Assembly (NCBI GenBank): GCA_964019335.1
Contig: OZ025742.1
Span: 316,444-380,443, forward strand
Direction of reading: 5' to 3'
Length of the DNA: 64,000 nucleotides
Origin: Diplonema japonicum
Taxonomy: Eukaryota; Protista; Euglenozoa: Diplonemea
Shown here: positions 7,194 through 63,736 of the stretch, in pieces
How the letters are laid out: every line of letters begins with the position of its first letter
Numbering within the stretch: position 1 is the first letter of the stretch
Notes under the pieces: model-generated
The model's input: only the letters and a program-made list of their open reading frames with translations
Databases searched by the model: none
What the model was told of the DNA's origin: nothing
Position numbers and translations under genes: made by a program

Positions 7194-7241
<48 letters not shown>

Positions 7242-39625: not shown

Positions 39626-40090
39626 GACGGGAGTCGAGGGACTCCACGACAGCCAGGCTGGTTTCAGACGCGGCCGCTCCACGGAGGAGCAGGTGGCAAC
39701 CCTCACTGCATGTCGAGGAACAAAGACGAACGACGTCTCTCGGCCGCTCTGCTGTTCGACTTCTCTTCTGCCTTCGACCTGGTGCCCCATGGTGCCCTGC
39801 TGGACAAGATGCGAGGGAAGGGTCTCCCCGAACCCTTCGTGGAGTGGACGCGGTCCTTTCTATGCGGCCGTACTGCTGCGGTCACGATTGGACGGTCGAG
39901 GGGGTCGACGACGAAGGTGCGACGGGGTGTCCCCCAGGGCTCTGTCTTGGGTCCCATCCTGTACACCATCTACGTCGACGAACTCGCCAGGAGACTGGAG
40001 AGACTGGCGGATGTCGGTTGTGATCTCCTCTGGACAAGGGGACATGGCTGGGCTGGAGCGGAAGGCACAGGCAGTGGTGGATGCGGTTGA
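39626..40090 (+). mobile_element. Internal RT fragment of LINE family C (degraded)
   Basis: Near-identical to ~58696-59190 with small deletions, one removing the YADD codons. Confidence 0.9.
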
Positions 40091-40444
40091 AATTTTTTAG
40101 GGCATGCGGCTTACAAACATGAGTTTTCCACAGAGGGTACAGTGCGTAGGGCAGGCTAGGTACCCCCTTAGAAAAGTGCCCAAAAAAAAATGTCCGGAAG
40201 ATAAAATGTCTGGAAGATAAAATGTCCGGAAGATAAAATGATACCTTCACTTTGATTTTTGATTTCTCAAGCTCTGCTTTTCAACTCAGCTTTGTTGATT
40301 TTTTCTTCCTTTCCCCATTTTCCTTTTATCCTTTTCAAACCTTCTACTCCCGACCCGGCAGTGGAACAGATATTATTATTATTATTATTAAAAACTTTTG
40401 CGACACATTAAAAACAAATTTAAAAGAAAAGAAAATTTACAAAA

Positions 40445-43400
40445 ATGGACCAGACCAACGCGGACGCCTCCACGAGGCCTCCACTGGACAACTTGCAGAT
40501 GCAAGTCGACGAAGCAGCCGCGGAGGAGGTTCCAGAGATAAATCTGGACCTCGAGAAGAAGGAGGAGAAGGAAGGAGGGAGGGGGCGCCCAGGGAACTGG
40601 GTCATGGGCCCCTTGCCGAAGAAGGTCGACAAGGAGGGAGCGGCAGAGATTCTCTCTGCAACGATAGCAGGAGAGACGGAAAAGGCCGTCATCCTGAAGA
40701 CGGCAAATGCCGTCTTTTTACTTTTCTCCGCCGCCACCCCACCAAAACACACCCAAACAAGGGTGAACGGCCAGGTAGCGACGCTACTACCTGCCGTCAA
40801 GGTGGTGGACCCTCTCGAGGCAAGAGAGGAAAAAAAGTGGAAAGGGAAGGGCGGAAAGAAAACAAAAAAAAGCCGCCTCAACAGGTACCCGGTAGATGGA
40901 TTCTTAGCCCACTACGGGGAAAAGACGGGGTGGAGCCTCTACAAGGAGGCTGTCGAGGACTGGAACCAAAGAAGGGCTCCACCTCCTTCCGCCCAAAAGT
41001 TGAGAGATCCTCAACAACAGCAGAGCCCAGAACACTTAAAGGTTCTGGAAGAGCTACGGGGACAGCAGCAGGTGCTGCAACAACAACTGCAGATGCAACA
41101 ACAACAGCTGCAGCTCCAACACCAGCACCAACAGCAACAACCTCCGAACCAAGACAAAATCCTGGAAATACTGAAGGGGCAGCAGCTACAACACCAGGAG
41201 CAGATGCAACAATTCCAGCAGCAGCTACAAAAACAACAACAACAACACCAGGAGCAGGTGCAGCAATTCCAACAACAGCTGCAGAATCAGCAGCAGCAGC
41301 TACAAAAACAGCAGCAGCAACATCAGGAGCAGCTACAGCAACAGCAAGTAGCACACCAGGAGACGGTGAAGGGTCTCCTGGAGCTGGTGAAACAAAGCCA
41401 GCAGCAGCTAAAAAAGGACACCTCGGTGATCCAAAAGACGCTGCTCCAGTTATCACTGGGCAAAAAAAAAAAAAAAAACCGCCACAGACCCCGCCCAGCC
41501 CACGGTAGCCCTGCAGGAACACCCCCTCTCTTATACGGAGTCGGAGACCGAGCAGGAGGAAACCCCATTATTAGGGGCGAGAAGGAGGAGGGTGCCCGAG
41601 ATGCTAGAGCATCAATCGACGAGGGAGACCCATACAAAACGCCGGAGGGCCCTGAGCGAAGCCGCAACAAGGCACATACCTCGGCACGGGTGTTTCACCG
41701 AGAGGAAGCCATGGTGGAACAGCGAACTGGACACGGCCTTTGAAGAAAGGGACACCCTCAGAGACGCCATCCTCAGGGGGGAATCCGAAGATCACGCAGG
41801 GCTCGCTGGGCTCAACAATGCAGTCAACGAGACGGTGAAGGCATCCAAAGAGAAGTCATGGAGGAGCCTCTGCTCCAAGTTCAGCTCCTCCAAGAACTTG
41901 CCTGCGGCATTCAAGGCAGTCAAGGAGCTCGACGGCAGGTCATGGAGGCCACCGATGCCCCCCCTTCAACACGGCGACGCTCTTCTCACAGGCAACAAGG
42001 CTAGGGCCGATCGTCTCGGACGCTACTACGAGACGATCTGCGGAGACGACACTGTCCCTGGTCTCGACACAACAGGACAGACGCAGGAACCCTACGAGGG
42101 CGGAACGGGCTACTTCACGATGGACGAACTGCTGAGACAACTGCTCAGGACGAGAACAAAGAGTGCTGCAGGCGACGATGGAATCTTCAACGTGATGCTG
42201 ATGCGTCTGGGTAGGGAATCCCTGAGAATCGTTCTACAGCTGTTCAATCTCTCCTGGGCGAGCGGGCAAGTTCCGGACACGTGGAAACTGGCACTAGTCG
42301 TCCCGATCCCGAAGCCGGGCAAAGACCCCACGAAGATTGAGTCCTACCGCCCCATCAGCCTGACGAGCTGCCTCGGCAAGCTCATGGAAAGGATGGTCGA
42401 GGCCCGCGTGACGTATCTACTTGACTCCCCGACAACGATGGTAGAGGGACTTCACCCCGCCCAGGCTGGCTTCAGGAAAGGGAGGTCCACCGAGGAGCAG
42501 GTTGCCGCCATCGTGCAGCATGTGACGATAAAAAGGAACGCCGAAGTTAAGGAGGCATGCCTCACCATACTCTTCGACTTCTCAAAGGCGTTCGACAGGG
42601 TCAACCACGAGGCACTCATTCAGAAGATGTCTCAGAAGCGCTTCCCTACGGCCTACACCAGGTGGGTTTCCTCCTTCCTAACCACGATCTACGCGGACGA
42701 CGTCGCGGTAGTAGTCTCTGCCACAACAAGGACTGAGCTCGAGGCCAGGGCCACGGCGGTAGTGGGTGCAGTCGAAGACTGGTGTACACGATGGGGGATG
42801 CAGTTGAGCAGGGAGAAGACGCTGTACGTCCCCACCCCCAAATGCGAACCGTACGACTTCCACGTCTACTTCCCCTCGACCGGGGCGACGCATCCGGGCT
42901 TCGAATTCCAGCCGCTGGAGCTCAAGGGCCGACTCATCGCCGGGGGACCTACTCACCTGATCGGGAGGAGGCTCCTGTCCGTTAACCGCACGGCCATGAC
43001 ACGACGCGACGTCTCTGCACTCGTCTCCAAAGGGCTGGTGTATGAATTCTCCACGGCCGTCCCCGTCGCGAGGCGTGATAGGGCCAAGTATCTAGGGGTC
43101 ATCCTTGACGCTGACTTGTCTTTCGGTGCCCATGCCCGCGACATCATCGAGAGATACGACAAACGAATTCGCATACTGCGGCTCCTCTCCGGCTCGTCCT
43201 GGGGCAGTTCCGCAGCATCACTCAGGTCCTTGTACCTGGCCTACGTCCTACCGGTGTTCACCTACTCGATTGGCATCTTCTTCGCACTGATGTCTGCTCA
43301 AGACAGGAAGGCACTGTGCATGAGGCACGATGAGGCAGCCCGACGAATCACGGGGTGCGTCAAGAACACCTCCACCTCGGCTGTACTGTGTGAGGCCCGC

Positions 43401-44987
43401 TTGCGCCCGCTCGACCTGATGGCCGACGCTGCTTCTGCCATTCTACTGCAGAGGGCACTGAGGTGGGTGGGAACCCCGGTGAACAGGGTGGTCAGGGGTG
43501 CAGCTACCGCAGGATGGGCCTTGGGAGCGCTGAAGGCGACGAGGAGTTCTGGGCTGAGTGCGGTTGCTTCCCTACCGCTAGGGCCTGATACGAGAGCCCC
43601 CCCCTGGGCGGAAGGCATCCACGTCGATCCCTACGCCACCGACACCAGGAGGACACTCCCCGACGATGTGAGGGCGGCAGCGGCTGCGGAAAAGCTGGAC
43701 GAGATCCCAAGCGGCGCTCTGGTAGTGTACACGGACGGCTCGGTGATAAGGGGGAGAGGGGGAGCTGGGGTTGCCCTCAGAGTCCCCGACATGGACCTCA
43801 CCCTTACCACCTCTCACGGGGCCGGCATGGTCTCCACACCCATGTGCGCCGAGGGCACCGCTATCCTGATGGGGTTGAAGGAGGCTGCGGAGGTGTACAA
43901 AACGGTCGTGAACCTGAGGGGCCGCCCTCTCTACCTGCTGACCGACTCACAGACGATGCTGCGGAGGCTCGCTGGGGGCCCCGGACAGCAGAGGGAGTCC
44001 ACGGACAGACGGATCTGGGATGCCGCTTCCTGGCTCAGGGCCAAACGCTCCGGTGATGTGCACTTCTGGTACATCCCCTCCCACTGCGGTGTGACGGGGA
44101 ACGAGCTCGCCGACGGAGCGGCCAGGGACGGGCTGTCGAAGTCGCCTTGCGGGGTTAGCTACCGCTCCAGCAAGGCGGCCATAAGAGCGTGGCTGAGAGG
44201 AAGGTCGCGTGCGAGATACAACAGCGACTCCCCCGGCCACCACCGCCTCGTCACCGGTGGCGAATGTCTTTCTCTCCCACCACTCAGTAGGAGGGAGGAG
44301 GTCCTGATCATTCGGCTCCGGACCGGACACACGCCTTTGATGAGGGGGTACCTCCAGCTCAAGGGACCCCTGAGGGCTGAGGGGAGACATCACCTCACCT
44401 GCCCCGCCTGCAACGTTCAATCACCGCTCGACGCTGATCACCTGCTGAGGGGCTGTCATTCTCTGGCTCCCACAGCTAAGTCCTTCTACGACACTGGGCT
44501 GCCGCTCCGCGCGCTGCTTTCCAAGCACTCCGCCGAGGTCTGCGCCTTCATCGAGGCCTCCGGGCTCTTATCATGGTCTGAGTGTGGGATCTTCCCCCCG
44601 GCCGACGCAGCACAAGGGTGATCGTGAGCCCATTATAGACCCCCCCCCCCCCCCCCCCACCCCTTTGTCCCCCCCCCCACACACACACACTCACACGCAA
44701 ATGGGCCAAGAAACAACCTCCCGGGAGGCAGCCACAGGGAAGGCCGGGAGGGCGCAGGGCGCAGCAAGAGAACGCCCCTGCGTTCAGCCTCGAGGGGACC
44801 GCCCCGAATGTAATCAGCCAGGTCGGCTGTCCCAGGAAGGGGGAACGGAGCACCGAAGGGAAGGTTCAGCCCACGTGGTGGCCCTCTCGGTTACTCCAGA
44901 CAAAAGACTGGACACACCCCACACCCCTCCCCCCACCCCCCAGTTTCCCCCCAGTGGTTATTATTGCAAAAAAAAAAAAAAAAAAAA
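40445..44987 (+). mobile_element. Non-LTR retrotransposon family A (ORF1 + RT-RNase H), internally deleted
   Basis: Q-rich coiled-coil ORF1 (40445-~41650) runs directly into post-endonuclease ORF2 (41592-44621: PWWN, YRPISL, QAGFR, DFSKAFD, IYADD, KYLGV, YTDGS, IPSHCGVTGNELAD, CPAC..HLL..C); APE and GVPQG segments missing; ends cagtggttattattgc-polyA. Confidence 0.9.
41592..44621 (+). pseudogene. RT-RNase H polyprotein of family A, lacking endonuclease and part of RT
   Basis: WVSSFLT|TIYADD junction lacks the GVPQGS motif present in families C and E. Confidence 0.85.
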
Positions 44988-45104
44988 TGTAGGCACCCTC
45001 CCTTTGACTGGACACACCCCACACCCCTCCCTTTTCTCAGGTGTTGCTCTCCATGGCGGCCCTGCATTGGTATTTTGAAAAAAAAAAAAAAAAAAAAAAA
45101 ATGT

Positions 45105-46265
45105 CCTACGGCGGGCCAGCAAAAGGCTGAGGGTGCTGAAGCTCTTGTCCGGCACGTCCTGGGGCAGCAAGAGGGACACTCTGCGGTCTCTCTACGTTAC
45201 GTACATCCTCCCGCTGCTGCGCTACTGCATGGGGGTCTACTACAGCAGGCTCGATGATGTCGGGAGGAAGGACCTGGCTGGGCTTCACCAGGAGGCGGCG
45301 GTGCTGATCACGGGCTGCTGGAGTGGCTCCGGAGGGTACAAGCTCCTAGCTGAGGCAGGACTGCTTCCCCTCGAAAGAATGGCGGAGGGTGCTGCGGCGA
45401 CGATGACGGCGAAGGCCTTCTGCTGGCAGTCCTCCCCGGTTCACAGGGAGACGGTCAAGCTGAAGCAGGCGAACAGGCTGGGGTGTGGGTGGCTGCGCTC
45501 TGGCTACCAAGCACTGCGTCGATGCGGGTTGGAACCAAAGGTGCACTTCGAGTACCTGTCTGTTGTCGGTGGGTGCCCTGTGATCGGGAGGGGGGCGATC
45601 GACACTCCTGCTGGTACTCCCTCCCTAGCGTTCTCCCTGTCGAGACGCGTGACCCAGATCTACGACCTCATTGTTGAGTCTGGCCTGCTCGCCTGGTCAC
45701 GCTCCGGACTGTTCACCTCGCCATCATCCCTGGCGTCTACAGACGTCACTGCACCTTCAAACGTGCCGCCTCCTCCTCCGGTCTCTCTTGACGCCGGTCC
45801 CGCGGCCCCCGTGCTGCGCTAAGGGATCGCCCCGTGTGTGTGTGTTAAATGGAATGTTGTGTTTCCCACTTTCCTTTCCCTTCCTTCCCCTTCCTCTCAC
45901 TGTTTCCCATTTCCCCTTTTTTTTCACACTCACCAATGATTCGCTCAATAGGAGCAATTCCTCCCTGGGGGGCTTTCCGCCGGAGGTTCCAGCCAAAGAA
46001 GGACATCCAGCTGGAAGGTAGGCCCCCGTTTTTCTCTCACTTGACTGAGGGAATAATGTAATTCAGCCCTCTTCGGCTGTCCCAAAGCAGAGCACGGGTT
46101 GGTGGGGGACCAGGGCTCCTCCTGCTTGCAGAAGCCTGGTCCTTTGCCCTCCCTATTTCCCCATGGTTTCCCTTCACCTTTTTATTTTCCCTTTTCTCAG
46201 GTGTTGCTCTCCATGGCGGCCCTGCATTGGTATTTTGAAAAAAAAAAAAAAAAAAAAAAAAAAAA
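45105..46265 (+). mobile_element. 5'-truncated, internally deleted copy of LINE family C with poly-A tail
   Basis: Matches 59566-60021, then ~60895-61582. Confidence 0.95.
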
Positions 46266-46396
46266 TGTTTCTAACTCAATCTCTCGACTCTGGCTTCACT
46301 CCTATCCTTTCTTTTCACCTCCCTCCCCAGTGTCTTCCCTTATTTTCCATTACCAGGCCCCTGTCCCCCGCCCCCAGTGTTATTCAAAATATTCAC

Positions 46397-46773
46397 CCAC
46401 CTTTTCCTTTTCCACTTCTTGACTTTTAACTTCCCTTCTGCTTTCCCAACATGGTTTCCGTCCCGGGTATGACGTTAAACTGCGTCCGCCGACACATTTG
46501 GGTCAACATTCTCTGATGACCAAGCCGTCTTTTTCCGTTTCTTCTCCCCTTCTCTTTGTTATGTTATTTTCATTATTCTTTCTGGCGATAGACTGATACG
46601 GGCCATGGAAGCAACCTCTGCTTAATTCCTGGTACGTGGGAGGCTCCTCTTGAGGATGTCAGTCACCTTTTCCCTTTTTTACTCGACTCTCTGTTTTCGT
46701 ATGCAGTATTTATTCTTTCCCACCCCTTTTTATCTATTTCTTCGCTTCTTCATCCTAACTTAAAACCATTTCA
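46397..46773 (+). repeat. Family D 3' non-coding repeat, copy 2
   Basis: Aligns to 34799-35207. Confidence 0.85.
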
Positions 46774-46890
46774 GTCACCTTTCATATAGAAAGAAAAAAG
46801 AAAAAAGAAGGACAGATGATTCAAGCTTCGGTGTACACGATCGAGCTTGATTTGAATTCCTTTATTTTGAGAAAAAAAAAAAAAAGAAAG

Positions 46891-46922
<32 letters not shown>

Positions 46923-47035
46923 GAAGAACGAAACTTAATTGAATTGAATTTATTGGCTCCCGAAAGCCCAACAAGTCCAGCAGACGGTGGAGTTTCACAG
47001 TCAGCTGGTTAATTTTTCACAATTGAAACTCCTCC

Positions 47036-47385
47036 AAAGTTCTTAAAATCTGGGAGGTCGTCTCTTGTTACTAGAGGCGGCTAATGCCTCGAGACCCAGG
47101 TGCTGCCTGGTGGGTGGGATCGGTTTTATTTTATTATGAAAAGAGCGTGGTGAGGGGGTCCAAGTAATTTACTACAGGGAGCAGCGAACCAGGACCCCTC
47201 GACCAATGGCTCAGTAACAGAGACTGCTTTTCACGAATCACTTTCAAACACCTCTCTTGGTTTGAAGTGATGTCCCTTTCCCTTTCCCTTTCCCTTGAAT
47301 GGTTTTCTCTACTCCCCTTCGATCCTCCCGCCTGGTAGTGGAATATTTATTATTATTATTTATTATTATTATTAAAAAAAAAAAA
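47036..47385 (+). mobile_element. Short structured non-coding retroposon (family F), copy 1
   Basis: Near-identical to 61590-61921; ends gtagtggaatattt(att)n-polyA. Confidence 0.75.
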
Positions 47386-47388
47386 TGT

Positions 47389-47785
47389 ATTTTTTCCCTT
47401 CCTTCCCCTTCCTCTCACTGTTTCCCATTTCCCATTTCCCCTTTTTATTTTTCACACTCACCAATGATTCGCTCAATAGGAGCAATACCTCCCTGGGGGG
47501 CTTTCCGCCGGAGGTTCCAGCCAAAGAAGGACATCCAGCTGGAAGGTAGGCCCCCGTTTTTCTCTCACTTGACTGAGGGAATAATGTAATTCAGCCCTCT
47601 TCGGCTGTCCCAAAGCAGAGCACGGGTTGGTGGGGGACCAGGGCTCCTCCTGCTTGCAGAAGCCTGGTCCTTTGCCCTCCCTATTTCCCCATGGTTTCCC
47701 TTCACCTTTTTTTTCCCTTTTCTCAGGTGTTGCTCTCCATGGCGGCCCTGCATTGGTATTTTGAAAAAAAAAAAAAAAAAAAAAA
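47389..47785 (+). mobile_element. 3'-UTR-only copy of LINE family C with poly-A
   Basis: Matches ~61215-61582. Confidence 0.9.
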
Positions 47786-47796
47786 GGTAGGGAAGG

Positions 47797-47826
<30 letters not shown>

Positions 47827-47827
<1 letters not shown>

Positions 47828-49047
47828 TGTCAAGTGACAAAATGACGAAGCCGAGCAAGGCGGGCGCCTCCAAGGGGCCCCTACCGGACGGGAGCGAGCC
47901 CGACCAAGACCCGCCGCAGCTAGTGCTGCAAACCACCGAGGTGGTGATCAGAAAGACCCCCCCCGAGACGACCCCCAAGACGAAGCCCACCCGGAAGCAC
48001 TACGACGCAGTCGTAGCCCCGCTTGCCCCCAAGCCCACGTGGGCGGCCTTCATTGCGCAGGCTGGACTGGGGAAGTCGATGAGGTTCGACGGTGTCCTAG
48101 GCACCATCGTAACCACAGGGACTCCCCCTCTTCAGTCCTACTCAGTGAGGGACGGAGACACTACCCATAAGGTGGTGTTCGAGGAGCAGAAGGGATCCTT
48201 TAAAAGGAAACTACCGGGTGGGTCTCGTAGAGGGACCAAAATAGACTTCCGCAGGGAGTTCGGGGGGGCGAGCTGGTCGCAGGTGTGGGAGCTGGCCGAC
48301 GAGAAGGAGGGGAGGAAGAAGAAGGCGAGAGAGGAGAAGGGGGCCAAAGCCGCAAAAAGGAAGGCCGAGGCCAGGGAAAGAGAGGAGAAGCTGGAGGCGA
48401 GGATCCAGGCGCTGGAGAGCGCCGAGAAGGAAGAGGGAGGCGGGATGGAGGACGACTGGGGCTGGAGGGAAGCCATGGACAGGCGGATTGCCGAGTTGGA
48501 GCAGGCGAGGGAACAGGCCGGGCTGTGGGAGAAGGCGTGCGAGAGGAAGGTGGAAGAGGTGGAGATGAGAGGGGTGCGTACGGACGAGAGGACTGAGGAG
48601 CTGAACAGGAGGGTGGGCCTGGTGGAGGGCGAGCTTGGTGGCCTGAGGGGGGAGATTTCTTCCTTGAAGGCGTCATCGGAGAGGACGGAGCGGTCGGTGG
48701 AGGAGCTGAAGCAAGGGATGAACAGATTACTCATCCACTTGACTACAGGAGCCCCCCCACCAGGAACCTCCGAGGAGGCAGACGGGTCCCCAGAACAGAG
48801 GGGACACGTGCCGTCCACCGATGGCGCTGACGAGGGGACTGACACCCCAGACTGCCCCAGGCACGCTGCGACACCGGAGAGAAAGGGTACCGTAGCACCT
48901 TTATGCTACGACACCCCCCCACCAGCCGAAAGGCTCGTAGGAGTTGCCACAACAAGGCAGACAACCCTACACACCACCCCCTCGCAGACAACGCCCCTGC
49001 ACAAGGTGAACCCTCCCGTAAAAAGGAAGGTTGAAGGCCAGTACTAA
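47827..49047 (+). CDS. ORF1 of family E (coiled-coil protein; start may be ATG 47842)
   Basis: 406-aa ORF with heptad coiled coil, directly upstream of the pol ORF. Confidence 0.8.
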
Positions 49048-53404: not shown

Positions 53405-53440
<36 letters not shown>

Positions 53441-53979: not shown

Positions 53980-54024
53980 TGTAGAAAGAAAAGAAAAGAA
54001 ATGTAGAAAGAAAAGAAAAGAAAA

Positions 54025-56863
54025 ATGGGCAAGAAGAAAGACAAGCACAAGGAGAAGGCAAAGCCGGAAGGGAACGGGGCCAGCACGCAGCTGGCCCAGT
54101 CCAAGGCCAGGGAGGAGCGGCGGGTGGAGAGGATGCTCCGCAGCGCTGGAGCAGCCGGGGAGCTGGGGCAGCTCCTGACGCCGGAGCACCGGGAGAAGAT
54201 GACGGGGGTGGTCACCGTAATTGACCTCCTCACGCCCGACGCCGCCGCCGCTACAGCCGGCCCAGCGACACCTGTCGCCTCCACCCCGACCGGCTCCGTC
54301 AAAAGGCCGGTTTCGCCTGACGCCAGCGTCGCCACCCCGACCTCCAGCAAAAAAGCTAGGAGGAAGGCCGCCAGAGCCGCGCGCGCTGACGCTGCCGCCG
54401 AAGCCGCACACATAGCTGACGCCACACACCCCCTCGAAGCCGCACGCACTGCGGCCGACGTCGAACTCGCGGGAATCGCTGCTGATTTGGAAGCTGCACG
54501 CGAGTCGGCCGACGTGGTAGCTGCAGAAATAGCTGCTAAGATGAAGGCTGCGCAGGAGGTGGCTGATGCTGCTGTTGTCAAAATGGCAGCCGAGACGGAA
54601 GCTGCACGCGTGGCTGGTGTGGAGGCTGCTCGCAGAGCAGTCGAGGCTGAGGAGAAGGCTCTGCGCGAGCGGTCTACTGCACGACTTGCGGCAGAGGAGA
54701 AGGAGGCTGCGCGTGCTGCGGCCGAGATGAAAGCAGCCGAGGAGAAGAAGGCTACAGCCGCAGCCGCTGCAGCCGAGAAGAAGAAAGCCGCAGCCGCCGC
54801 CGCCGCCGAGAAGAAAGCAGCAGCCGCCGCCGCCGCCGAGGAGAAGGCCGCCGCCGAGAAGAAAGCAGCAGCCGCCGCCGCCGCCGCCGAGAGGAAGGCC
54901 GCAGCCGACGCCGCCAGGAAGCAAGCTGCAGCCGCCGCCGCCGAGAAGGAGACCGCAGCCGCAGCCGCCGCCGCCGAGGAGAAGAAGAAGGTCGCAGCCA
55001 CCGCCGCCGCCGAAAAGGAAGCCGCCGCAGCCGCTGCCAAAAAGGAGGAAGCTTTGAGGTTGGCGGCCGCCAAGAAGGCAGATGCCCAGAAGGTCGAGGA
55101 CGAAGCAGTCGCGAACGCTTCCGCCAACGCGTCAACAGACCAAGGCACGCTCCTCCTCAGCTCAGACTCTGACACCAGCTCTGGCCCTGAGGAGATGGAG
55201 GACGACCCTGCCCCTGCCCCTTCCACAACCCCGCGATGGGACCTGGTGCCAGACACATGGGACGCCCCGATCTACACCAACGTGTCCCCCCCGACGGAAA
55301 CATCCCGCGCTGTCATTGCGCTCGACGATCCCTCCGGAATGGGGGTCGTGTGCTCCGCGTTACCTACGGCATCCATCACCTTTGTCCTTATGACAGAGGT
55401 CCCCGGTGTCACCACCCCCAGCGAGATTGTCATGGTCTCTGGGTCGCGCGCAGTGAACAGGAGGGTCCACGTCTCCACGTTCGGGCTGGACCCCCCCACC
55501 TACACCCCGCCTTCCACCTTCAACAGCGGATCGGAGGTCGTCTACGTCTGTGTCAGTGCAGACAGCCTGAAGGAGGCGAAGGCCAGGGCCCTGGAGCTCG
55601 CCAAGGCTCAGGGCGCGGTGATGGAGGATCGTGCGGTCTTCCGCCCAAGGAAGTTCGGTGAGGAGGAACCGCGGGCGAGGCACTGGACCCACGAGGTGGG
55701 ACTGCGCCTGCAAGCAGCACACGTCCACGCCGTCCTGCGCCGGTCCGGGGACGGGTGCTTAATGCGGACGACGGAGAGACGCGGGGGGTACGCTTATGTA
55801 CCCATCGTGGCGGAAGGGAGGGCGGATGCCTTTCGGATTGCGGGGACGCTGGGTGGGTTGTCTCTCGGGGTGGCGCACCGTAAGGGATGGACTGTGCGGT
55901 GCCTACCGGAGACGGAACAGCGGCTCCGGGAAACCCTCGCAAAACTGCGTACGAAGCGCAAGTTTTTGCTCACCGGGGCCCCGCCGTCCATCACCAGGGC
56001 GGCCTTCGACGAAGTGATGGACCACATCGGTTGGAAACCATCCTCCGTCGTTCCAGGGCACGAGGCAACTCGTGTTCTTCATCGTCGTCGACAGCCCGCC
56101 CCCGAAGTCCAGGACGTGGCTCCTTGGGGGGCGCCTTGTCTGCCTCCGTGATGCGGACGACCACCCGACCGTCAAGCCGCCCCCTCTCATCAACAGGACG
56201 ACACCTGCATCTGCACCTGCGCTTGCAACGTCCTCGACCCCGGCACCCACATCTTCTCATGTACCTGCACCTGCGCCTACTACACCTGTACCTGACCCGG
56301 CACCTGTATCGGCGTCGACACCCTCGGAGACTGGCCCTGCGGTGAAAGCAACTGGGCTTCCTCCCACCAGCCCGTGGGCGTCCATACCGAGCTCGGTGGC
56401 TCCCCCCCAGCTCGACACTGTGACGTCCCCTACACCGCCCCGCAACGTGTCTGCGGGAAACAAGGAGGGAGTCCCTTCCGGGTCGCCTGAGGTCGCCGCT
56501 CTCACTGAGCTCGTCGCCACGCTGAAGGAGTCGATCGTCGGGCTGCAGAGGACGATCGACTCTCAGCAGGAGATGATCTCCGATCTGCGGACGACGCTCC
56601 GCCTCCTCCTGCCGCAGGCGGCCACGCTGACGACGGGAACGGCAGTGCCGCGGGACCCTACACCGGGGGCGACGACGACACACGACAGTGTCTGGAAAGG
56701 GAAGGGGAAGGGGAAGAAGGGGGCTCCTCCTCTCGCTACGACCTCTGAGGCTGCGGTGACGAACCTGGGTACGAGGGGGCGGGCCAGGTCGTTCGCGGAG
56801 ACCAAAGATCTCTTCACCAATGGGGTCAAGGGGCGCTCTGCCTCCATGGGTCCATCCAATTGA
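54025..56863 (+). CDS. ORF1 of family C (Ala/Lys/Glu-rich coiled coil, globular middle, Pro/Thr linker, coiled coil); one +1 frameshift near 56060
   Basis: ORFs 54025-56151 and 56072-56863 overlap and read as one protein; frameshift may be a mutation or an assembly indel. Confidence 0.75.
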
Positions 56864-57004
56864 AGGGGCCCCGCAGAACAGGGGGAGCAGCAGATCTACG
56901 ACCATGCTCCCTCTCCTAGTCTCCCTCGCATCCTCCCCAGGAGACTCCTACCTCTCTGTTTCTTCACCGACTTTTCTGCACTGATCCCCACCCTACTCGG
57001 GAGG

Positions 57005-60000
57005 ATGTCCGTCAGGGACCTGCTGGGGCTGCTTGGGCTGGTCGAAACAAACCCTGGCCCACCCAAGAAGCTGCCGCCCCCGTCGCCTAAGGGTCTCAAG
57101 GTTGTCTCGTGGAACTGCAACGGCCTCGTTGCGAAATGGACCGTCGTATCTCGCCATGCTGACTTCTTGTCGCTGGACATCATCATGATACAGGAGACGC
57201 ACCTGAGGGAAGGGCACGACACGCCACACCTGCCTGGGTACAGGTCATACAGGAGGGATCGGTTGACACCGGTGACTGACGGCACTGCGACGAGGGGTGG
57301 TGGTATTGTCACGTATGTCCGCGACGATCTTGCCTCGGAGGAGGTTCCGCACGTACTCCCGGCTGGGGACTGTGTCACTGAGAGACTGGATGTGAGGATC
57401 TCCTGCGAGAAGCGTGAGCCGATCACTCTCTCCAACGTTTACCTTACACCGGTAAGCGCGAGCAGAGGCACGAGGGACCCTGAGTACCTGCGGCCTGGCA
57501 GCCTTCCCATGGGGAAGAACACAGTCATAGCGGGTGACTTCAATGCTCACCACAGCTCCTGGGACGCCACGGTGACGACGCCGAACGAGAGGGGGAACGT
57601 GGTCAGGGACTGGCTGGACACCCACGGGTACACCGTCTACAACGACCGCAACGAACCGACGAGGGACTCGTCACGACACGTTCTGGACCTGGTTGTGGGG
57701 CGCTGCGCGAAGCTTGAGCCGAAGACGCTGGGCACGTGGGGCTCCGATCATAGTCCCGTATCCTTTCACCTGCCTCTTGAGGACGTCTACCGTTCGGAGC
57801 GCCCCTTCCCCACCTGGAATTTCAAAAAAGCCAGATGGGATGACTACACTGCTGCTGTTGCCCGCCTGCTTGCTGGTGTTGACACGGCGGCTCCGATTGA
57901 CTCTGTCACGAAGGGGTTTACACAAGCCCTTTTGACTGCGGCGAACGACCACATTCCCCTCTGTGGGATGCGACGTGGCCCGACCCCCTGGTGGACTGCT
58001 GAGCTCGAGGACGCCTTCGAAGAGCGGAACACCCTGCGCGAACTCCTGCTCCAAGAGGCTGACGTGGTGGTGGAGGAGTACAGGGCGAAGGTGAAAGAAG
58101 TCAACCGACTTCTTGACGAGACGAAGCGTGAGGCATGGGGAAGGATGGCGGCCGACCTCAGCCGGAGCAAGGACCTCGGGGCTGCGTTCAGAGCGGTGAA
58201 GAAGCTGGACGGCAGGCACCGAAAGACACACCTTCCTGTACTCGAGGGAAGATTTGTGTCGGACAAGGCGAAGGCCGACCGGCTGGGGGCGCACTTCGCT
58301 AAGCTCTACGGCAGGCGTGGTGACGGGAACTCGAAGGACGCCGCTCCTTCTGCAAGCAGACTCGGGTGTCAAGCGTTCACCGTGGACGACCTCACCCGCG
58401 GCCTGAGAAGGATGAAGACGCGCAGCGCGGCCGGGGAAGACGGAATCTTCTCGGAGATGCTCCTACACCTGAACACGGACTCTCTCGGTGTCCTCCTTCT
58501 ACTCCTCAATCGCTCCTGGCTGATGGGTGTCGTCCCCGGTGCCTGGAAGAAGGGAGTGATCGTCCCGGTACCGAAACCTGGAAAAGATGCGACTCTCTTG
58601 GCTTCCTACCGGCCGATCTGCCTGACCAGCTGCCTCTGCAAGCTGCTGGAGAGGATGATCGAGGAGAGGCTCACGTTTCTTCTTGACGCGGACGGGACGG
58701 GAGTCGAGGGACTCCACGACAGCCAGGCTGGTTTCAGACGCGGCCGCTCCACGGAGGAGCAGGTGGCAACCCTCACTGAGTGCATGTCGAGGAACAAAGA
58801 CGATCGACGTCTCTCGGCCGCTCTGCTGTTCGACTTCTCTTCTGCCTTCGACCTGGTGCCCCATGGTGCCCTGCTGGACAAGATGCGAGGGAAGGGTCTC
58901 CCCGAACCCTTCGTGGAGTGGACGCGGTCCTTTCTATGCGGCCGTACTGCTGCGGTCACGATTGGACGGTCGAGGGGGTCGACGACGAAGGTGCGACGGG
59001 GTGTCCCCCAGGGCTCTGTCTTGGGTCCCATCCTGTACACCATCTACGTCGACGAACTCGCCAGGAGACTGGAGGGACTGGCGGACGTCTCGGTGCTCTA
59101 CGCCGACGACGTGGCGGTTGTGATCTCCTCTGGACAAGGGGACGTGGCTGGGCTGGAGCGGAAGGCGCAGGCAGTGGTGGATGCGGTTGAGGACTGGTGC
59201 AGGGAGCGTGACATGCTGCTGAGCACGTCCAAGACGCAGGCAGTCTGCGTCCCCCCCCAGAAACGTCTCGGGGTCTACTTCACTTCGTCACGAGTCCCCC
59301 TTCAGCCAGGTGCCTTCCAGAACCCACTCTTCGGCCTGGGGGTGAACGCCGATGGCACGATCTCCGGGGACCAGGAGCTGGCGGGCCTTCAGGTTGTGGA
59401 GGCGGGTGGTGTGCGGATCCGCTGCGTGCGGGACATGCATGCAGCCGTGCGACGGCCCGACGTGGATTACGTTGCGGCCCGTCCCCTGCCTCTATCTGAA
59501 CACGCGAGGTACCTTGGGGTTACGGTGGACTCTGGGCTCACGTTCGGTGAACACGCACAGGACATCCTACGGCGGGCCAGCAAAAGGCTGAGGGTGCTGA
59601 AGCTCTTGTCCGGCACGTCCTGGGGCAGCAAGAGGGACACTCTGCGGTCTCTCTACGTTACGTACATCCTCCCGCTGCTGCGCTACTGCATGGGGGTCTA
59701 CTACAGCAGGCTCGATGATGTCGGGAGGAAGGACCTGGCTGGGCTTCACCAGGAGGCGGCGGTGCTGATCACGGGCTGCTGGAGTGGCTCCGGAGGGTAC
59801 AAGCTCCTAGCTGAGGCAGGACTGCTTCCCCTCGAAAGAATGGCGGAGGGTGCTGCGGCGACGATGACGGCGAAGGCCTTCTGCTGGCAGTCTTCCCCGG
59901 TTCACAGGGAGACGGTCAAGCTGAAGCAGGCGAACAGGCTGGGGTGTGGGTGGCTGCGCTCTGGCTACCAAGCACTGCGTCGATGCGGGTTGGAACCAAA

Positions 60001-61156
60001 GGTGCACTTCGAGTACCTGTCGGCTACGCCCCTGGCGGCCCCGTGGCAGACAGGCATGGTCGACTTCAGGACTGACCTCCCCGGCGGGGTCACGCGATCG
60101 TCGCCAGACGCGGACAGGCGGAAGGCGGCCGAGGCTGCTCTTGCGGCTCTCCCCCCGGGCATCCATGCCTACACGGATGGCTCGGTTGTACAGGTCGGAC
60201 AGAAGGCGAAAGGTGGCTCTGGGGTTTATCTGCAGCTGCCTCCCCCCCTGACCCCTGTGTCTGTGTGCCATGGCGTCAACGACTTCTGTTCATCCTTTCG
60301 GGCAGAGGGCATGGCTGTGAAAACGGCACTGGATATGGTGGCCACCCTCCGAAAAACACACCCTTCGCTGGCGAAGTCCCCGCTGTCGATCTGCACCGAC
60401 TCCCTCTCCCTCGTCGAGCAGCTGCGAGCTGGCCCAACGCGACAGAGGGAGAAGCTCGACCACCAGACGTGGAGCCGGCTGGTGTCCGCGGCGCGCACGC
60501 AGGGGACACCGGTGGTCCTCCAGTTTGTGCCCTCCCACTGTGGGGTGGACGGGAACGAGAAGGCTGACGCTCTGGCCGGGGAGGGAACGAAGCGGAAGCA
60601 GGACAGGCCCTCCCTTGACTACCGATCAGTGAGGGCCCTGGTGCGACGGTGGGTGGTGCGGAGGTCCGCGGAGCTCATAACATCCCTCGCCCACAACTAC
60701 GCGGTGGCGACCGAGCTTCGGTCTGCGCACTTCCCCCTTGGCTTCCCCAGACAAGCTGAAACGGTCATCTCGCGGCTGCGGATTGGTCACTCGGCTCTCT
60801 TCTTCGGCTTCCTGCAGACTGCTGGCCCGAACAGGAAGCACAAGGGTGTGCTCCGGTGCCCAGCCTGCCACGCAGCACCGATGTCCAGGGAGCATGTTGT
60901 CGGTGGGTGCCCTGTGATCGGGAGGGGGGCGATCGACACTCCTGCTGGTACTCCCTCCCTAGCGTTCTCCCTGTCGAGACGCGTGACCCAGATCTACGAC
61001 CTCATTGTTGAGTCTGGCCTGCTCGCCTGGTCACGCTCCGGACTGTTCACCTCGCCATCATCCCTGGCGTCTACAGACGTCACTGCACCTTCGAACGTGC
61101 CGCCCCCTCCTCCGGTCTCTCTTGACGCCGGTCCCGCGGCCCCCGTGCTGCGCTAA
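57005..61156 (+). CDS. ORF2 of family C: 2A-like, AP endonuclease, RT, RNase H, CCHC-type tail
   Basis: LLGLVETNPGP; SWNCNGL, IQET, GDFNAHH, SDH; YRPICL, DFSSAFD, GVPQGSVLGP, YADD, RYLGV; YTDGS, TDSLS, VPSHCGVDGNEKAD; CPAC..HVVGGC. Confidence 0.95.
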   Translation: MSVRDLLGLLGLVETNPGPPKKLPPPSPKGLKVVSWNCNGLVAKWTVVSRHADFLSLDIIMIQETHLREGHDTPHLPGYRSYRRDRLTPVTDGTATRGGGIVTYVRDDLASEEVPHVLPAGDCVTERLDVRISCEKREPITLSNVYLTPVSASRGTRDPEYLRPGSLPMGKNTVIAGDFNAHHSSWDATVTTPNERGNVVRDWLDTHGYTVYNDRNEPTRDSSRHVLDLVVGRCAKLEPKTLGTWGSDHSPVSFHLPLEDVYRSERPFPTWNFKKARWDDYTAAVARLLAGVDTAAPIDSVTKGFTQALLTAANDHIPLCGMRRGPTPWWTAELEDAFEERNTLRELLLQEADVVVEEYRAKVKEVNRLLDETKREAWGRMAADLSRSKDLGAAFRAVKKLDGRHRKTHLPVLEGRFVSDKAKADRLGAHFAKLYGRRGDGNSKDAAPSASRLGCQAFTVDDLTRGLRRMKTRSAAGEDGIFSEMLLHLNTDSLGVLLLLLNRSWLMGVVPGAWKKGVIVPVPKPGKDATLLASYRPICLTSCLCKLLERMIEERLTFLLDADGTGVEGLHDSQAGFRRGRSTEEQVATLTECMSRNKDDRRLSAALLFDFSSAFDLVPHGALLDKMRGKGLPEPFVEWTRSFLCGRTAAVTIGRSRGSTTKVRRGVPQGSVLGPILYTIYVDELARRLEGLADVSVLYADDVAVVISSGQGDVAGLERKAQAVVDAVEDWCRERDMLLSTSKTQAVCVPPQKRLGVYFTSSRVPLQPGAFQNPLFGLGVNADGTISGDQELAGLQVVEAGGVRIRCVRDMHAAVRRPDVDYVAARPLPLSEHARYLGVTVDSGLTFGEHAQDILRRASKRLRVLKLLSGTSWGSKRDTLRSLYVTYILPLLRYCMGVYYSRLDDVGRKDLAGLHQEAAVLITGCWSGSGGYKLLAEAGLLPLERMAEGAAATMTAKAFCWQSSPVHRETVKLKQANRLGCGWLRSGYQALRRCGLEPKVHFEYLSATPLAAPWQTGMVDFRTDLPGGVTRSSPDADRRKAAEAALAALPPGIHAYTDGSVVQVGQKAKGGSGVYLQLPPPLTPVSVCHGVNDFCSSFRAEGMAVKTALDMVATLRKTHPSLAKSPLSICTDSLSLVEQLRAGPTRQREKLDHQTWSRLVSAARTQGTPVVLQFVPSHCGVDGNEKADALAGEGTKRKQDRPSLDYRSVRALVRRWVVRRSAELITSLAHNYAVATELRSAHFPLGFPRQAETVISRLRIGHSALFFGFLQTAGPNRKHKGVLRCPACHAAPMSREHVVGGCPVIGRGAIDTPAGTPSLAFSLSRRVTQIYDLIVESGLLAWSRSGLFTSPSSLASTDVTAPSNVPPPPPVSLDAGPAAPVLR

Positions 61157-61589
61157 GGGATCGCCCGCGTGTGTGTAAAGTGAAATGTTGTGTTTTCCAC
61201 TTTCCTTTCCCTTCCTTTCCCTTCCTTCACCTTCCTCTCACTGTTTCCCATTTCCCCTTTTTATTTTATTTTCACACTCACCAATGATTCGCTCAATAGG
61301 AGCAATACCTCCCTGGGGGGCTTTCCGCCGGAGGTTCCAGCCAAAGAAGGACATCCAGCTGGAAGGTAGGCCCCCGTTTTTCTCTCACTTGACTGAGGGA
61401 ATAATGTAATTCAGCCCTCTTCGGCTGTCCCAAAGCAGAGCACGGGTTGGTGGGGGACCAGGGCTCCTCCTGCTTGCAGAAGCCTGGTCCATTGCCCTCC
61501 CTATTTCCCCATGGTTTCCCTTCACCTTTTTTTCCCCTTTTCTCAGGTGTTGCTCTCCATGGCGGCCCTGCATTGGTATTTTAAAAAAA

Positions 61590-61921
61590 AAAGTTCTTAA
61601 AGTTCTTAAAGTCTGGGAGGTCGTCTCTTGTTACTAGAGGCGGCTAATGCCTCGAGACCCAGGTGCTGCCTGGTGGGTGGGATCGGTTTTATTTTATTAT
61701 GAAAAGAGCGTGGTGAGGGGGTCCAAGTAATTTACAACAGGGAGCAGCGGACCAGGACCCCTCGACCAATGGCTCAGTAACAGAGACTGCTTTTCACGAA
61801 TCACTTTCAAACACCTCTCTTGGTTTGAAGTGATGTCCCATTCCCTTTGGTTTTCTCTACTCCCCTTCGATCCTCCCGCCTGGTAGTGGAATATTTATTA
61901 TTATTATTATTATTAAAAAAA
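61590..61921 (+). mobile_element. Short structured non-coding retroposon (family F), copy 2
   Basis: Near-identical to 47036-47385. Confidence 0.75.
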
Positions 61922-61928
61922 CAAAAAA

Positions 61929-63339
61929 GGATGGCTCGGTTGGCTCGGTTGTACAGGTCGGACAGAAGGCGAAAGGTGGCTCTGGGGTTTATCTGCAGCT
62001 GCCTCCCCCCCTGACCCCTGTGTCTGTGTGCCATGGCGTCAACGACTTCTGTTCATCTTTTCGGGCAGAGGGCATGGCTGTGAAAACGGCGCTGGATATG
62101 GTGGCTACCCTCCGAAAAACACACCCTTCGCTGGCGAAGTCCCCGCTGTCGATCTGCACCGACTCCCTCTCCCTCGTCGAGCAGCTGCGAGCTGGCCCAA
62201 CGCGACAGAGGGAGAAGCTCGACCACCAGACGTGGAGCCGGCTGGTGTCCGCGGCGCGCACGCAGGGGACACCGGTGGTCCTCCAGTTTGTGCCCTCCCA
62301 CTGTGGGGTGGACGGGAACGAGAAGGCTGACGCTCTGGCCGTGGAGGGAACGAAGCGGAAGCAGGACAGGCCCTCCCTTGACTACCGATCAGTGAGGGCC
62401 CTGGTGCGACGGTGGGTGGTGCGGAGGTCCGCGGAGCTCATAACATCCCTCGCCCACAACTACGCGGTGGCGACCGAGCTTCGGTCCGCGCACTTCCCCC
62501 TTGGCTTCCCCAGACAAGCTGAAACGGTCATCTCGCGGCTGCGGATTGGTCACTCGGCTCTCTTCTTCGGCTTCCTGCAGACTGCTGGCCCGAACAGGAA
62601 GCACAAGGGTGTGCTCCGGTGCCCAGCCTGCCACGCAGCACCGATGTCCAGGGAGCATGTTGTCGGTGGGTGCCCTGTGATCGGGAAGGGGGCGATCGAC
62701 ACTCCTGCTGGTACTCCCTCCCTAGCCTTCTCCCTGTCGAGACGCGTGACCCAGATCTACGACCTCATTGTTGAGTCTGGCCTGCTCGCCTGGTCACGCT
62801 CCGGACTGTTCACCTCGCCATCATCCCTGGCGTCTACAGACGTCACTGCACCTTCAAACGTGCCGCCCCCTCCTCCGGTCTCTCTTGACGCCGGTCCCGC
62901 GGCCCCCGTGCTGCGCTAAGGGATCGCCCCGTGTGTGTGTGTTAAATGGAATGTTGTGTTTTCCACTTTCCTTTCCCTTCCTCTCACTGTTTCCCATTTC
63001 CCCTTTTTTTTATTTTCACACTCACCAATGATTCGCTCAATAGGAGCAATACCTCCCTGGGGGGCTTTCCGCCGGAGGTTCCAGCCAAAGAAGGACATCC
63101 AGCTGGAAGGTAGGCCCCCGTTTTTCTCTCACTTGACTGAGGGAATAATGTAATTCAGCCCTCTTCGGCTGTCCCAAAGCAGAGCACGGGTTGGTGGGGG
63201 ACCAGGGCTCCTCCTGCTTGCAGAAGCCTGGTCCATTGCCCTCCCTATTTCCCCATGGTTTCCCTTCACCTTTTTTTTCCCTTTTCTCAGGTGTTGCTCT
63301 CCATGGCGGGCCTGCATTGGTATTTTGAAAAAAAAAAAA
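61929..63339 (+). mobile_element. 5'-truncated copy of LINE family C (RNase H to poly-A) abutting the tRNA
   Basis: Matches 60176-61582; poly-A at 63328-63339. Confidence 0.95.
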
Positions 63340-63344
63340 TGTCA

Positions 63345-63417
63345 GGGGGTGTAGCTCAAATGGTAGAGCGCTCGCTCAGCATGCGAGAGGTAGAGGGATC
63401 GATGCCCTCCATCTCCA
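63345..63417 (+). tRNA. tRNA-Ala (anticodon AGC)
   Basis: 73-nt cloverleaf GGGGGTGTAGCTCAAATGGTAGAGCGCTCGCTCAGCATGCGAGAGGTAGAGGGATCGATGCCCTCCATCTCCA; G3:U70 pair; discriminator A; ATCG T-loop typical of eukaryotic tRNA-Ala. Confidence 0.93.
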
Positions 63418-63418
63418 C

Positions 63419-63428
63419 TTTTTTTTTT
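63419..63428 (+). terminator. Pol III oligo-T terminator
   Basis: T-run starting 2 nt after the tRNA 3' end. Confidence 0.7.
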
Positions 63429-63736
63429 GAAGTTTGGCCGCAAAAGTGGACTCACTATGTAAAAACTGCGTCCCGAGGTTGGGGTGTGCGCATTTGATCT
63501 CCTTGTCGTTGTCGAGTGCTATGTTGTCCCCACCTTAGAGATAACAGTCGAAAAGCTGTTGTCCTTTTTACTTTCGTCACTTTTTCTTGACGAAAAATGT
63601 TGTTCGGTTCACAGTATTTCTGGGATCTTCTTCATTTCACTTCCGAGGCCTTTACGGCAAGCACACAAGGAAAAATAAAACAAAGCAAAAAGGGTGTGGG
63701 AAAAAGAACGAAAAGAACGTACATTTGTCGAACATG

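Follow-up and report, generated by a model that had tools for sequence, protein, structure and literature searches.

Insertion beside tRNA genes is a textbook 'safe haven' strategy, and to our knowledge it has so far been described in LTR elements of yeasts and in dictyostelid elements. Among the latter, TRE5-A and TRE3-A of Dictyostelium discoideum, both non-LTR elements of the APE type, are directed to tRNA genes via the Pol III machinery and hit the same genes repeatedly; in the case of TRE5-A, ORF1p binds TFIIIB, and the B box is required for targeting. In being APE-type, tRNA-targeted and recurrent at the same genes, they resemble the elements of the diplonemid Diplonema japonicum described here. 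However, TRE5 inserts ~48 bp upstream, in the opposite orientation, and carries a zinc finger C-terminus (PMC5911963), and TRE3 inserts 40-150 bp downstream of the tRNA with a zinc finger in place of RNase H, whereas the D. japonicum elements lie 1-15 nt upstream, in tRNA orientation, and bear RNase H. Ty3 of S. cerevisiae and DGLT-A/Tj1/Tyl leave the same footprint, a few bp from the Pol III start of tRNA genes, but they are LTR elements placed in either orientation by a TFIIIB-tethered integrase, while TPRT in a single orientation is indicated for D. japonicum. NLTR-A of Dictyostelium purpureum (Dp_NLTR-A; Spaller et al. 2016) comes closest, being located 2-6 bp before mature tRNA +1 and equipped with an RNase H domain (PMC5006619; PMC5911963). 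This element provides both precedents that an initial sequence-only reading of the locus had believed to be missing, namely an RNase H-bearing element in this position and a site within ~5 nt of the tRNA.

The window analysed here is the 64 kb terminal stretch of a scaffold of D. japonicum, a marine protist whose assembly was built from HiFi and Hi-C data and reaches QV 59 (PMC13598402). At 40.2-63.3 kb, at least 10 poly(A) retroelement copies are stacked head-to-tail, ending 5 nt 5' of a tRNA-Ala(AGC) gene (Table 1), the upstream sequence of which reads ...GGTATTTTG-A12-TGTCA. Besides families A, C and E, the stack contains DF and G, which are non-autonomous, as well as micro-insertions; related fragments remote from tRNAs occur at 34867-35206 and 39626-40090.

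Table 1. Features of the retroelement stack and its tRNA-Ala target, from left to right.
Feature	Position	Strand	Remarks
Isolated internal family C fragment, RT region (C 4714-5208, 30-nt deletion)	39626-40090	+	without 3' end; left edge without TGT
Dispersed repeat 'H', 67-nt 3' end and A9	40115-40190	+	leftmost poly(A), then TGTC (40191-40194)
~2.9 tandem copies of (C/T)GGAAGATAAAATGTC	40195-40240	+	every copy terminates in local target motif AAAATGTC
G, short non-autonomous element, 5'-truncated	40241-40394	+	tail ...GCAGTGGAACAGATATTATTATT...A5
Family A copy	40399-44987	+	ORF1 40445-41743, ORF2 41592-44621; tail AGTGGTTATTATTGC-A20; then TGT 44988-44990
Family C 3' fragment and A24	44991-45101	+	last ~50 nt match C; then TGTC 45102-45105
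Family C copy, 5'-truncated, internally deleted (C 5583-6039 joined to 6913-7600), and A28	45104-46265	+	then TGT 46266-46268
DF, non-autonomous, 5'-truncated	46266-47385	+	A-rich tract inside at 46872-46921; tail GGTAGTGGAATATTTATTATT...A12; then TGT 47386-47388
Family C 3' fragment (~370 nt) and A22	47389-47785	+	
Micro-insertion GGTAGGGAAGGCTT and A28	47786-47832	+	TGTCA at 47828-47832
Family E, full length	47833-53979	+	ORF1 to 49047; ORF2 49031-53359; tail CAGTGGTTCATTTATTATT...A11; then TGT 53980-53982
19-nt AG-rich micro-insertion AGAAAGAAAAGAAAAGAAA and TGT	53983-54004	+	copies 5' UTR and target motif of the following family C element
Family C, full length	54005-61592	+	(GAAAA)n 5' UTR; ORF1 54025-56151; ORF2 57005-61156; tail GCATTGGTATTTT-A10
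F, 5'-truncated DF copy	61593-61928	+	middle of the C-F-C' composite
C', 1.4-kb 5'-truncated family C copy (C 6192-7600) and A12	61929-63339	+	member nearest to the tRNA
TGTCA, 5-nt spacer, remainder of the tRNA leader	63340-63344	+	source of the repeated TSD motif
tRNA-Ala(AGC) gene	63345-63418	+	T10 Pol III terminator 3' of it; scaffold end 582 bp away

Non-LTR hallmarks are present throughout, including poly(A) 3' ends, variable 5' truncation and flanking target-site duplications. The three autonomous-type families proposed for the array hold in that the ORF2s of A, C and E all contain RT with an RNase H domain C-terminal to it, as in RNase H-bearing LINE clades (I, Ingi, Tad, R1/LOA and others). 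Pfam matches to Exo_endo_phos (APE), RVT_1 and RNase_H were obtained for ORF2 of E and C, where the APE-like domain is N-terminal to RT, the criterion for APE-type non-LTR elements, but the A copy in the window gave RT and RNase H with no APE. This copy is internally deleted and has lost the APE; the idea that family A as a whole is an APE-less lineage was rejected, since an open frame of 1341 aa is present in a second A copy. Identity between ORF2s is 37% for A/C, 32% for C/E and 28% for A/E. No Pfam match was found for the ORF1s, for which the Atlas search gave only sub-threshold RRM-like leads; these searches thus revealed no domain for contact with Pol III factors.

Some of the original delimitations had to be redrawn. 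D (46269-46866) and F2 (46925-47373), formerly assigned to separate short families D and F, are one element, DF, because the same internal junction was found in 8 other loci, and the 'F' of the C-F-C' composite is a further copy of it. The A-run at 53404-53438 lies within the 3' UTR of E and marks no junction, since its distance to the true 3' end is a constant 367 nt in all copies. Moreover, the ATG listed for E ORF1 at 47827 is built from poly(A) and TSD, so that the real start is probably at 47843.

The element system is very young and unusually active. Open frames of 1429-1481 aa were seen in dozens of ORF2s, C ORF2 is 100% identical to the ORF of a D. japonicum transcript, and element copies are 98.5-100% identical, a range in which no age gradient along the stack (older copies distal) was resolvable. 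The nearest ORF2 relatives, at 30-41% identity, came from transcripts of Diplonema ambulator and Rhynchopus euleeides and from marine contigs, followed by arthropod proteins; no ingi/L1Tc or kinetoplastid element appeared among the few top matches bearing a source name. The sequences of 80 metagenomic relatives (≤39% identity) contained no tRNA, and protein searches, in collections without the D. purpureum genome, gave no Dictyostelium match. A PDB sequence search grouped ORF2 only generically with L1 and R2.

The array has 12 element 3' ends, and at 9 of these the next nucleotides are TGT(C)(A), the local leader. All A(n)TGT sites previously listed (40191, 44988, 45102, 46266, 47386, 47828, 53980 and 63340) were recovered, with an additional one at 54002, and in the whole window, on both strands, only three other A6+TGT sites exist (6838+, 27500+ and 4511-). 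Poly(A)-adjacent TGT is thus enriched in the array over the background, in which it follows ~2 of 87 C tails elsewhere in the genome (binomial P ~1e-13). The TGT at 46266-46268 doubles as sequence of the following DF element (microhomology), and the junction at 47785/6 opens into a 14-nt micro-insertion. The absence of TGT at 61592/3 and 61928/9 was confirmed, but a third junction, 40394/40399, lacks it as well; there, G passes into A through a 4-nt filler, CTTT, with no TSD. The first two both fall inside the C-F-C' composite, in which the full-length C abuts F directly without TSD, and both internal junctions are identical on scaffold C96, upstream of another tRNA. At the left end, 40195-40396 corresponds to the separate short element G and micro-repeats, and the tandem micro-repeats are read as micro-insertions or 5'-junction slippage. 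The proposed left half of the empty site (...gaaaagtgccc-A9) could not be kept as a flank, since 40115-40181 is not unique but the 3' end of dispersed repeat 'H', of which the genome contains at least 40 copies (identity 87-96%), and the A9 is therefore most likely its tail.

The arrangement extends far beyond this locus. Genome-wide pattern counts revealed 115 exact C tails, 45 of them at the spacing expected from a tRNA B box (reversed-pattern control, 0), together with 12 E and 11 A tails adjoining tRNAs (controls, 0), so that both the tRNA adjacency of the family 3' ends and the sharing of one tRNA-proximal site by several families are borne out. When the window and the fetched loci are taken together, just over half of the 47 C 3' ends adjoin a tRNA or tRNA-like gene, and the remainder run into the 5' part of another element. 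Conversely, a C, A, E or F/G tail lies 1-15 nt (median 6) upstream of 30 of the 36 tRNA genes in the sampled loci. In the fetched loci, tRNA-adjoining ends are always in tRNA orientation and involve at least 21 anticodon types; C, E and F also adjoin the tRNA-like head of a repeat, in which A and B boxes are present but no tRNA was called. Rfam scans of the window and 17 loci showed no other Pol III gene adjoining elements.

Spacers vary between tRNA-adjoining ends (TCTATC, GGTCCCCGCA, CACGAAACGTAA and others), and each locus's own spacer recurs at internal junctions of the same stack. The repeated duplication is TGT(C)(A) in the window, AAAGTAAATCCGTC in L004, TCCGTATCC in L007/L018, GGTCCCC(GCAG) in L021, CCTACCTCAAACA in L015, GAGAGGGTCACC in L035, TTCCGAAG in L014, 46 nt of tRNA-Arg in L005 and 15 nt of a tRNA in L019. 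Being locus-specific and repeated within its own stack, the spacer is a target-site duplication and not a recognition sequence, and the serial duplication of the tRNA leader suggested for the window is thereby upheld genome-wide. Empty paralogous loci, which had been proposed as a check, were also found: 7 of the 11 tRNA-Ala(AGC) loci are element-free, one such leader being CGACAAAAATTGTCA.

The tRNA-adjacent placement and the locus-specific spacer duplications indicate TPRT with position specificity for the Pol III start region. Thus, the array very probably represents independent TPRT insertions by a guild of diplonemid non-LTR retrotransposons that are position-specific to ~15 bp upstream of tRNA genes. 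In this process, the element would make its nick on the bottom strand, the template of the tRNA, at some position from -1 to -15, and the 3' OH on the tRNA side would prime cDNA synthesis. Even at a single target, L018, the nick position spans -1 to -15, so that the positioning would be loose or a second determinant would exist. The top-strand break would fall mostly at -5 to +3 and occasionally within the gene, at +15 or +46, and the staggered breaks would generate duplications of 5-18 bp. Each insertion would restore both leader and tRNA gene, leaving the site open to further hits and displacing older copies upstream. By analogy with Ty3 and Dictyostelium TRE5-A, we infer that the gene-bound Pol III machinery (TFIIIC/TFIIIB/Pol III), and not DNA sequence, would identify the target. 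The range of unrelated tRNA sequences hit, together with the tRNA-like A/B-box repeat, would fit this indirectly. Junctions without duplication may reflect composite units (C-F-C') moved as one RNA, or template switching.

A more elaborate version of this mechanism is possible, though less likely than not. It would comprise a diplonemid guild of at least six LINE families that evolved independently of those of amoebae and yeasts, with the Pol III pre-initiation complex serving as a ruler for a template-strand nick within 15 bp of tRNA +1. Conserved AT-rich 3' termini (TATTTTG-An, ATTATTATT-An) would then rebuild the TFIIIB/TATA-like region ~20-45 bp upstream, keeping the target active and regenerating it with each insertion, which would account for the open-ended stacking. 

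Alternatively, the same placement could be achieved if the site were found via the nucleic-acid structure of an active tRNA gene (an open promoter complex or R-loop, possibly read by the RNase H domain) rather than via TFIIIB/TFIIIC binding. The insertion range falls where Pol III is expected to start, RNase H is present in all families, and Dp_NLTR-A, the sole other element so placed, has RNase H too (PMC5006619). Nevertheless, Pp_NLTR-B has RNase H yet sits ~50 bp upstream (PMC5006619), and we regard this alternative as unlikely.

Random or regionally biased integration, followed by selection purging copies outside the harmless DNA near tRNA genes, would fit the tRNA/retroelement-rich islands on a few scaffolds (C52, C61, C51 and C15). 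It is very improbable, as selection cannot yield placement at the nucleotide level (1-15 nt) or a strict single orientation, and 39% of near-identical copies (<1% diverged) directly adjoin tRNAs. An assembly artefact, tandem duplication or unequal recombination in place of serial insertion deserves equally little credence. The near-identity of the copies (99-100%), the position of the stack 582 bp from a scaffold end and the presence of the C-F-C' sub-block twice in the genome could be cited for it, but the members belong to different families, differ in truncation point and carry individual poly(A) tails and duplications, dozens of loci share this architecture, and the assembly is of the type and quality given above (PMC13598402).

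Recognition of a DNA sequence, either poly(A)-TGT(CA) or the start-codon context poly(A)-ATG, with the tRNA incidental, is suggested by A(n)TGT at 9 array junctions and by TGT after two other genomic C tails. However, the spacers nearly always differ at the 45 C, 12 E and 11 A tRNA-adjoining ends, and every stack repeats its own; this locus specificity led to the rejection of A(n)TGT as a sequence-specific target and leaves the reading scarcely tenable. Finally, mobility of the tRNA genes themselves, as retroposed copies that land beside poly(A) tails, can be virtually dismissed: the adjacency itself, and nothing further, speaks for it, while the duplications flank elements and not tRNAs, one upstream TSD includes a duplicated part of a tRNA (46 nt), and element-free paralogous tRNA genes exist.

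How the Pol III machinery steers an endonuclease/TPRT element, as opposed to an integrase, is an unsolved question that the D. japonicum system may serve. It offers three to six deeply divergent co-targeting families with non-autonomous parasites, dozens of intact, transcribed copies and natural junctions in hundreds, and comparison between families should narrow the shared targeting module. Paradiplonema papillatum is a transformable relative in the host clade. Diplonemid genome annotation is also affected, with tRNA loci buried within 10-25 kb repeat stacks.

In the literature searched, D. japonicum is the first such case outside Amoebozoa and fungi, and one site common to several deeply divergent families at such scale has no counterpart; the convergent-evolution story of tRNA targeting now extends to Discoba. 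Within Euglenozoa, SLACS/CZAR/CRE1 of trypanosomatids are likewise site-specific non-LTR elements occupying a multicopy small-RNA gene, but they use a sequence-specific restriction-like endonuclease and lie inside spliced-leader RNA genes, instead of being position-specific before tRNA genes. According to its published description, Dp_NLTR-A is a non-LTR element that has two ORFs, with APE, RT and RNase H in ORF2, as in D. japonicum (PMC5006619), and in both the 3' end lies a few bp before tRNA +1, at 2-6 bp in the former (PMC5006619) and 1-15 nt, median 6, in the latter. Dp_NLTR-A, however, is one family of 28 copies, one of them intact, in an AT-rich amoebozoan host (PMC5006619), whereas in D. 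japonicum at least three (probably at least six) families with ORF2s 28-46% identical, and their non-autonomous partners, converge on one site, with dozens of intact copies, a wider insertion range and stacks >20 kb in a euglenozoan host.

In the sequence-only reading, head-to-tail retroelements had been described as stacked directly upstream of a tRNA-Ala gene. This arrangement proved to be real: ARAGORN and Rfam called a single tRNA in the window, Ala(AGC), which was immediately preceded by ...GCATTGGTATTTTG-A12-TGTCA, and Pfam recognized the ORF2 domains of the divergent non-LTR families A, C and E, whose ORF2 products share 28-37% identity. The A copy of the window lacks APE, and another A copy in the genome carries a 1341-aa frame. 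All the A(n)TGT sites listed by that reading were recovered, together with an extra one at 54002, and TGT directly followed 9 of the 12 element 3′ ends in this stack; for C tails in other parts of the genome the figure was about 2 of 87 (P about 1e-13).

Features of the stack (numbered in map order), of the rest of the window and of related loci. L, loci fetched around C 3′-end matches; C13 to C61, scaffolds; G000, the genome assembly
Feature	Position	Content
1, H dispersed-repeat tail		A9, then TGTC
2, junction tandem units	40195-40240	15-nt micro-repeats, ~3 (2.9 counted)
3, G		short non-autonomous element
4, A	ORF2 41592-44621	RT+RNase H
5, C fragment		
6, C copy		with deletion
7, DF		short non-autonomous element
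8, second C fragment		
9, micro-insertion		14 nt
10, E	ORF2 49031-53359	APE+RT+RNase H
11, micro-insertion		19 nt
12, C	ORF2 57005-61156	full length; APE+RT+RNase H
13, F		
14, C′		1.4-kb 5′-truncated C copy, then TGTCA
tRNA-Ala(AGC)	63345-63418	
Scaffold end	63419-64000	582 bp past the tRNA; no telomere-like repeat visible
Other junction tandem units	47786-47827; 53983-54004; L023(-) near 4409-4452; L004(-) near 1931-2033	
RVT_1 ORF	9592-12639 (+)	1015 aa
piggyBac-type ORF	31038-32096 (-)	DDE_Tnp_1_7, E = 8.5e-50
Repeated spacer	L004	AAAGTAAATCCGTC
Repeated spacer	L007/L018	TCCGTATCC (one stack, 8 kb between)
Repeated spacer	L021	GGTCCCC(GCAG)
Repeated spacer	L015	CCTACCTCAAACA
Repeated spacer	L035	GAGAGGGTCACC
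Repeated spacer	L014	TTCCGAAG
Duplication	L005	first 46 nt of tRNA-Arg
Duplication	L019	15 nt, from a tRNA
tRNA-like repeat head	L005 about 2040-2230 (-); L006 about 812-1000 (+); G000:C20:676945	
Convergent tRNA-Cys(GCA) pair	L035 2629-2818	46 bp between
Islands	C52 (90-260 kb); C61 (0-110 kb); C51 (79-168 kb); C15 (111-156 kb); C13 (27-60 kb)	ORF2 copies and tRNA genes

Insertion next to tRNA genes is a genome-wide phenomenon. The genome searched was a 62.5-Mb, 132-contig assembly, in which the window makes up the terminal 64 kb of its scaffold; the D. japonicum YPF1604 genome was assembled from HiFi plus Hi-C data (QV 59) and published in a note without transposon analysis (PMC13598402). 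The last 198 nt of C served as query, and flanks were then retrieved at 35 loci. The window and these loci together contained 47 C 3′ ends. For just over half of them, a tRNA or tRNA-like gene began no more than a few nucleotides downstream, and the remaining ones ran into the 5′ part of another element, therefore sitting inside a stack. For whole-genome counts, exact tail patterns were combined with a tRNA B box spaced as expected for an adjoining gene, and the reversed pattern was the control. The B box was found for 45 of 115 exact C tails, 12 of roughly 40 E ends and 11 of roughly 33 A ends, all controls being 0. In the sampled loci, which are skewed to C, a tail of C, A, E or F/G lay 1-15 nt (median 6) in front of 30 of 36 tRNA genes, always in the tRNA orientation, and the occupied genes comprised 21 anticodon types; of 12 bystander tRNAs, six were occupied, five empty and one ambiguous. 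tRNA genes and the ORF2 copies of every family were grouped in large islands, so that many stacks lie near each other. Both genes of a tRNA-Cys(GCA) pair were preceded by an A-family-type tail and an identical TGT spacer, a pattern suggesting that an occupied site was duplicated in inverted orientation.

The spacer, that is, the few nucleotides between the element poly(A) and tRNA nucleotide 1 (TGTCA in the window), differed from locus to locus with few exceptions, and the internal junctions of a stack repeated the spacer of that stack. These locus-specific repeats support the core interpretation put forward earlier, namely serial duplications of the tRNA leader by several families at one tRNA-proximal site, and the spacer is thus a target-site duplication. 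The duplications place the bottom-strand nick at -1 to -15, with a single target at L018 nicked at -6 and also at -15, and the top-strand break mostly at -5 to +3. This geometry is that of ordinary target-primed reverse transcription, set by a position that is fixed with respect to the gene and not by sequence.

The composition of the stack required some revision. D and F, taken as separate families, are one element, DF, because the identical D-F2 internal junction was seen again at 8 other loci, and F is a DF copy truncated at its 5′ end. The A-run at 53404-53438 is an internal part of E; in about 20 copies it lies a constant 367 nt from the actual 3′ end. The listed E ORF1 start codon (window 47827-47845) is formed where the final A of the upstream poly(A) meets the TGTCA duplication, and the first ATG of E itself is at 47843. 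The absence of TGT at the C-to-F (61592/3) and F-to-C′ (61928/9) junctions was confirmed, but the G-to-A junction (40394/40399) showed no duplication either. Both former junctions were matched base for base on scaffold C96 (locus L028), in a composite stopping at another tRNA with another spacer; therefore, C-F-C′ moved as a unit, which would have occurred via a read-through transcript of a stack or template switching. The G-to-A junction may have a similar origin.

Of 11 tRNA-Ala(AGC) loci, about 4 were occupied and 7 empty (the leader at one of the latter being CGACAAAAATTGTCA). The left half of the proposed empty site was not native flank, since 40115-40181 belongs to a dispersed repeat: these 67 nt are its 3′ end, of which at least 40 copies occur across many scaffolds (87-96% identity), and A9 is accordingly probably its tail. 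None of the listed copies adjoined any of 63 listed tRNA genes. Farther left, an orphan internal C fragment (39626-40090) had no TGT at its edge. The 5′ junctions carried short tandem units, such as (C/T)GGAAGATAAAATGTC in 2.9 repeats, each closing with the local target-site motif, and these look like abortive micro-insertions or slippage in 5′ joining.

Two further window ORFs were noted. The RVT_1 ORF, 21-27% identical to A and C, represents another retroelement class than the stack families; RVT_1 was its sole domain, APE and RNase H were not found in it, and no tRNA lies close by. The piggyBac-type transposase ORF was the sole large minus-strand ORF within a plus-strand gene run.

Copy identity reached 98.5-100%. 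With the A ORF2 N-terminus as query, 143 matching ORF2s were retrieved, which fall into six or more identity tiers and of which dozens have uninterrupted 1429-1481-aa frames. The C ORF2, which is transcribed, matched a D. japonicum transcript ORF in EukProt at 100% identity. Judging from these sequences, the tRNA-targeting system appears to be highly active in this species.

Regarding target recognition, the tRNA sequences used are unrelated to each other. The C, F and E tails also adjoined, with differing spacers, a tRNA-like repeat head composed of an A box (TGGTCTAGTTGGTTAGCGC), a B box (GGTTCAATTCTCC) and then about 80 conserved nt, which was not called a tRNA by ARAGORN or Rfam and may be a tRNA-derived SINE or Pol III gene. 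Since unrelated tRNAs and this A/B-box repeat are targeted, and the insertion footprint coincides with the Pol III start, the most economical reading would be that the elements are tethered to the TFIIIC/TFIIIB/Pol III complex at the target gene, as demonstrated for Ty3 and TRE5-A (PMC5911963). A live alternative is a structural cue, in which an open complex or R-loop would be read by the RNase H domain. The families have in common AT-rich 3′ termini (TATTTTG-An, ATTATTATT-An), which, once inserted, occupy the place where a TATA-like TFIIIB site would be expected and, speculatively, may keep the target active.

The closest protein relatives came from transcripts of other diplonemids (D. ambulator, Rhynchopus euleeides) and from marine contigs. 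The D. papillatum genome paper listed LINE- and SLACS-like ORFs and did not report tRNA association (PMC10161547), and no paper joining diplonemids, non-LTR elements and tRNA genes was found in the literature searched. In dictyostelids, Pp_NLTR-B inserts about 50 bp upstream of tRNAs (PMC5006619), and TRE5, in reverse orientation, about 48 bp upstream (PMC5911963), unlike the D. japonicum elements, which lie 1-15 nt upstream in the tRNA orientation. The RNase H and the placement a few bp upstream, here with a median of 6 nt, resemble the published description of Dp_NLTR-A of Dictyostelium purpureum, an RNase H-bearing element whose 28 copies are situated 2-6 bp in front of mature tRNAs (PMC5006619; Spaller et al. 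2016). Targeting of this kind is known from a single dictyostelid element; the D. japonicum system represents a new form of it that involves several families and is highly active.
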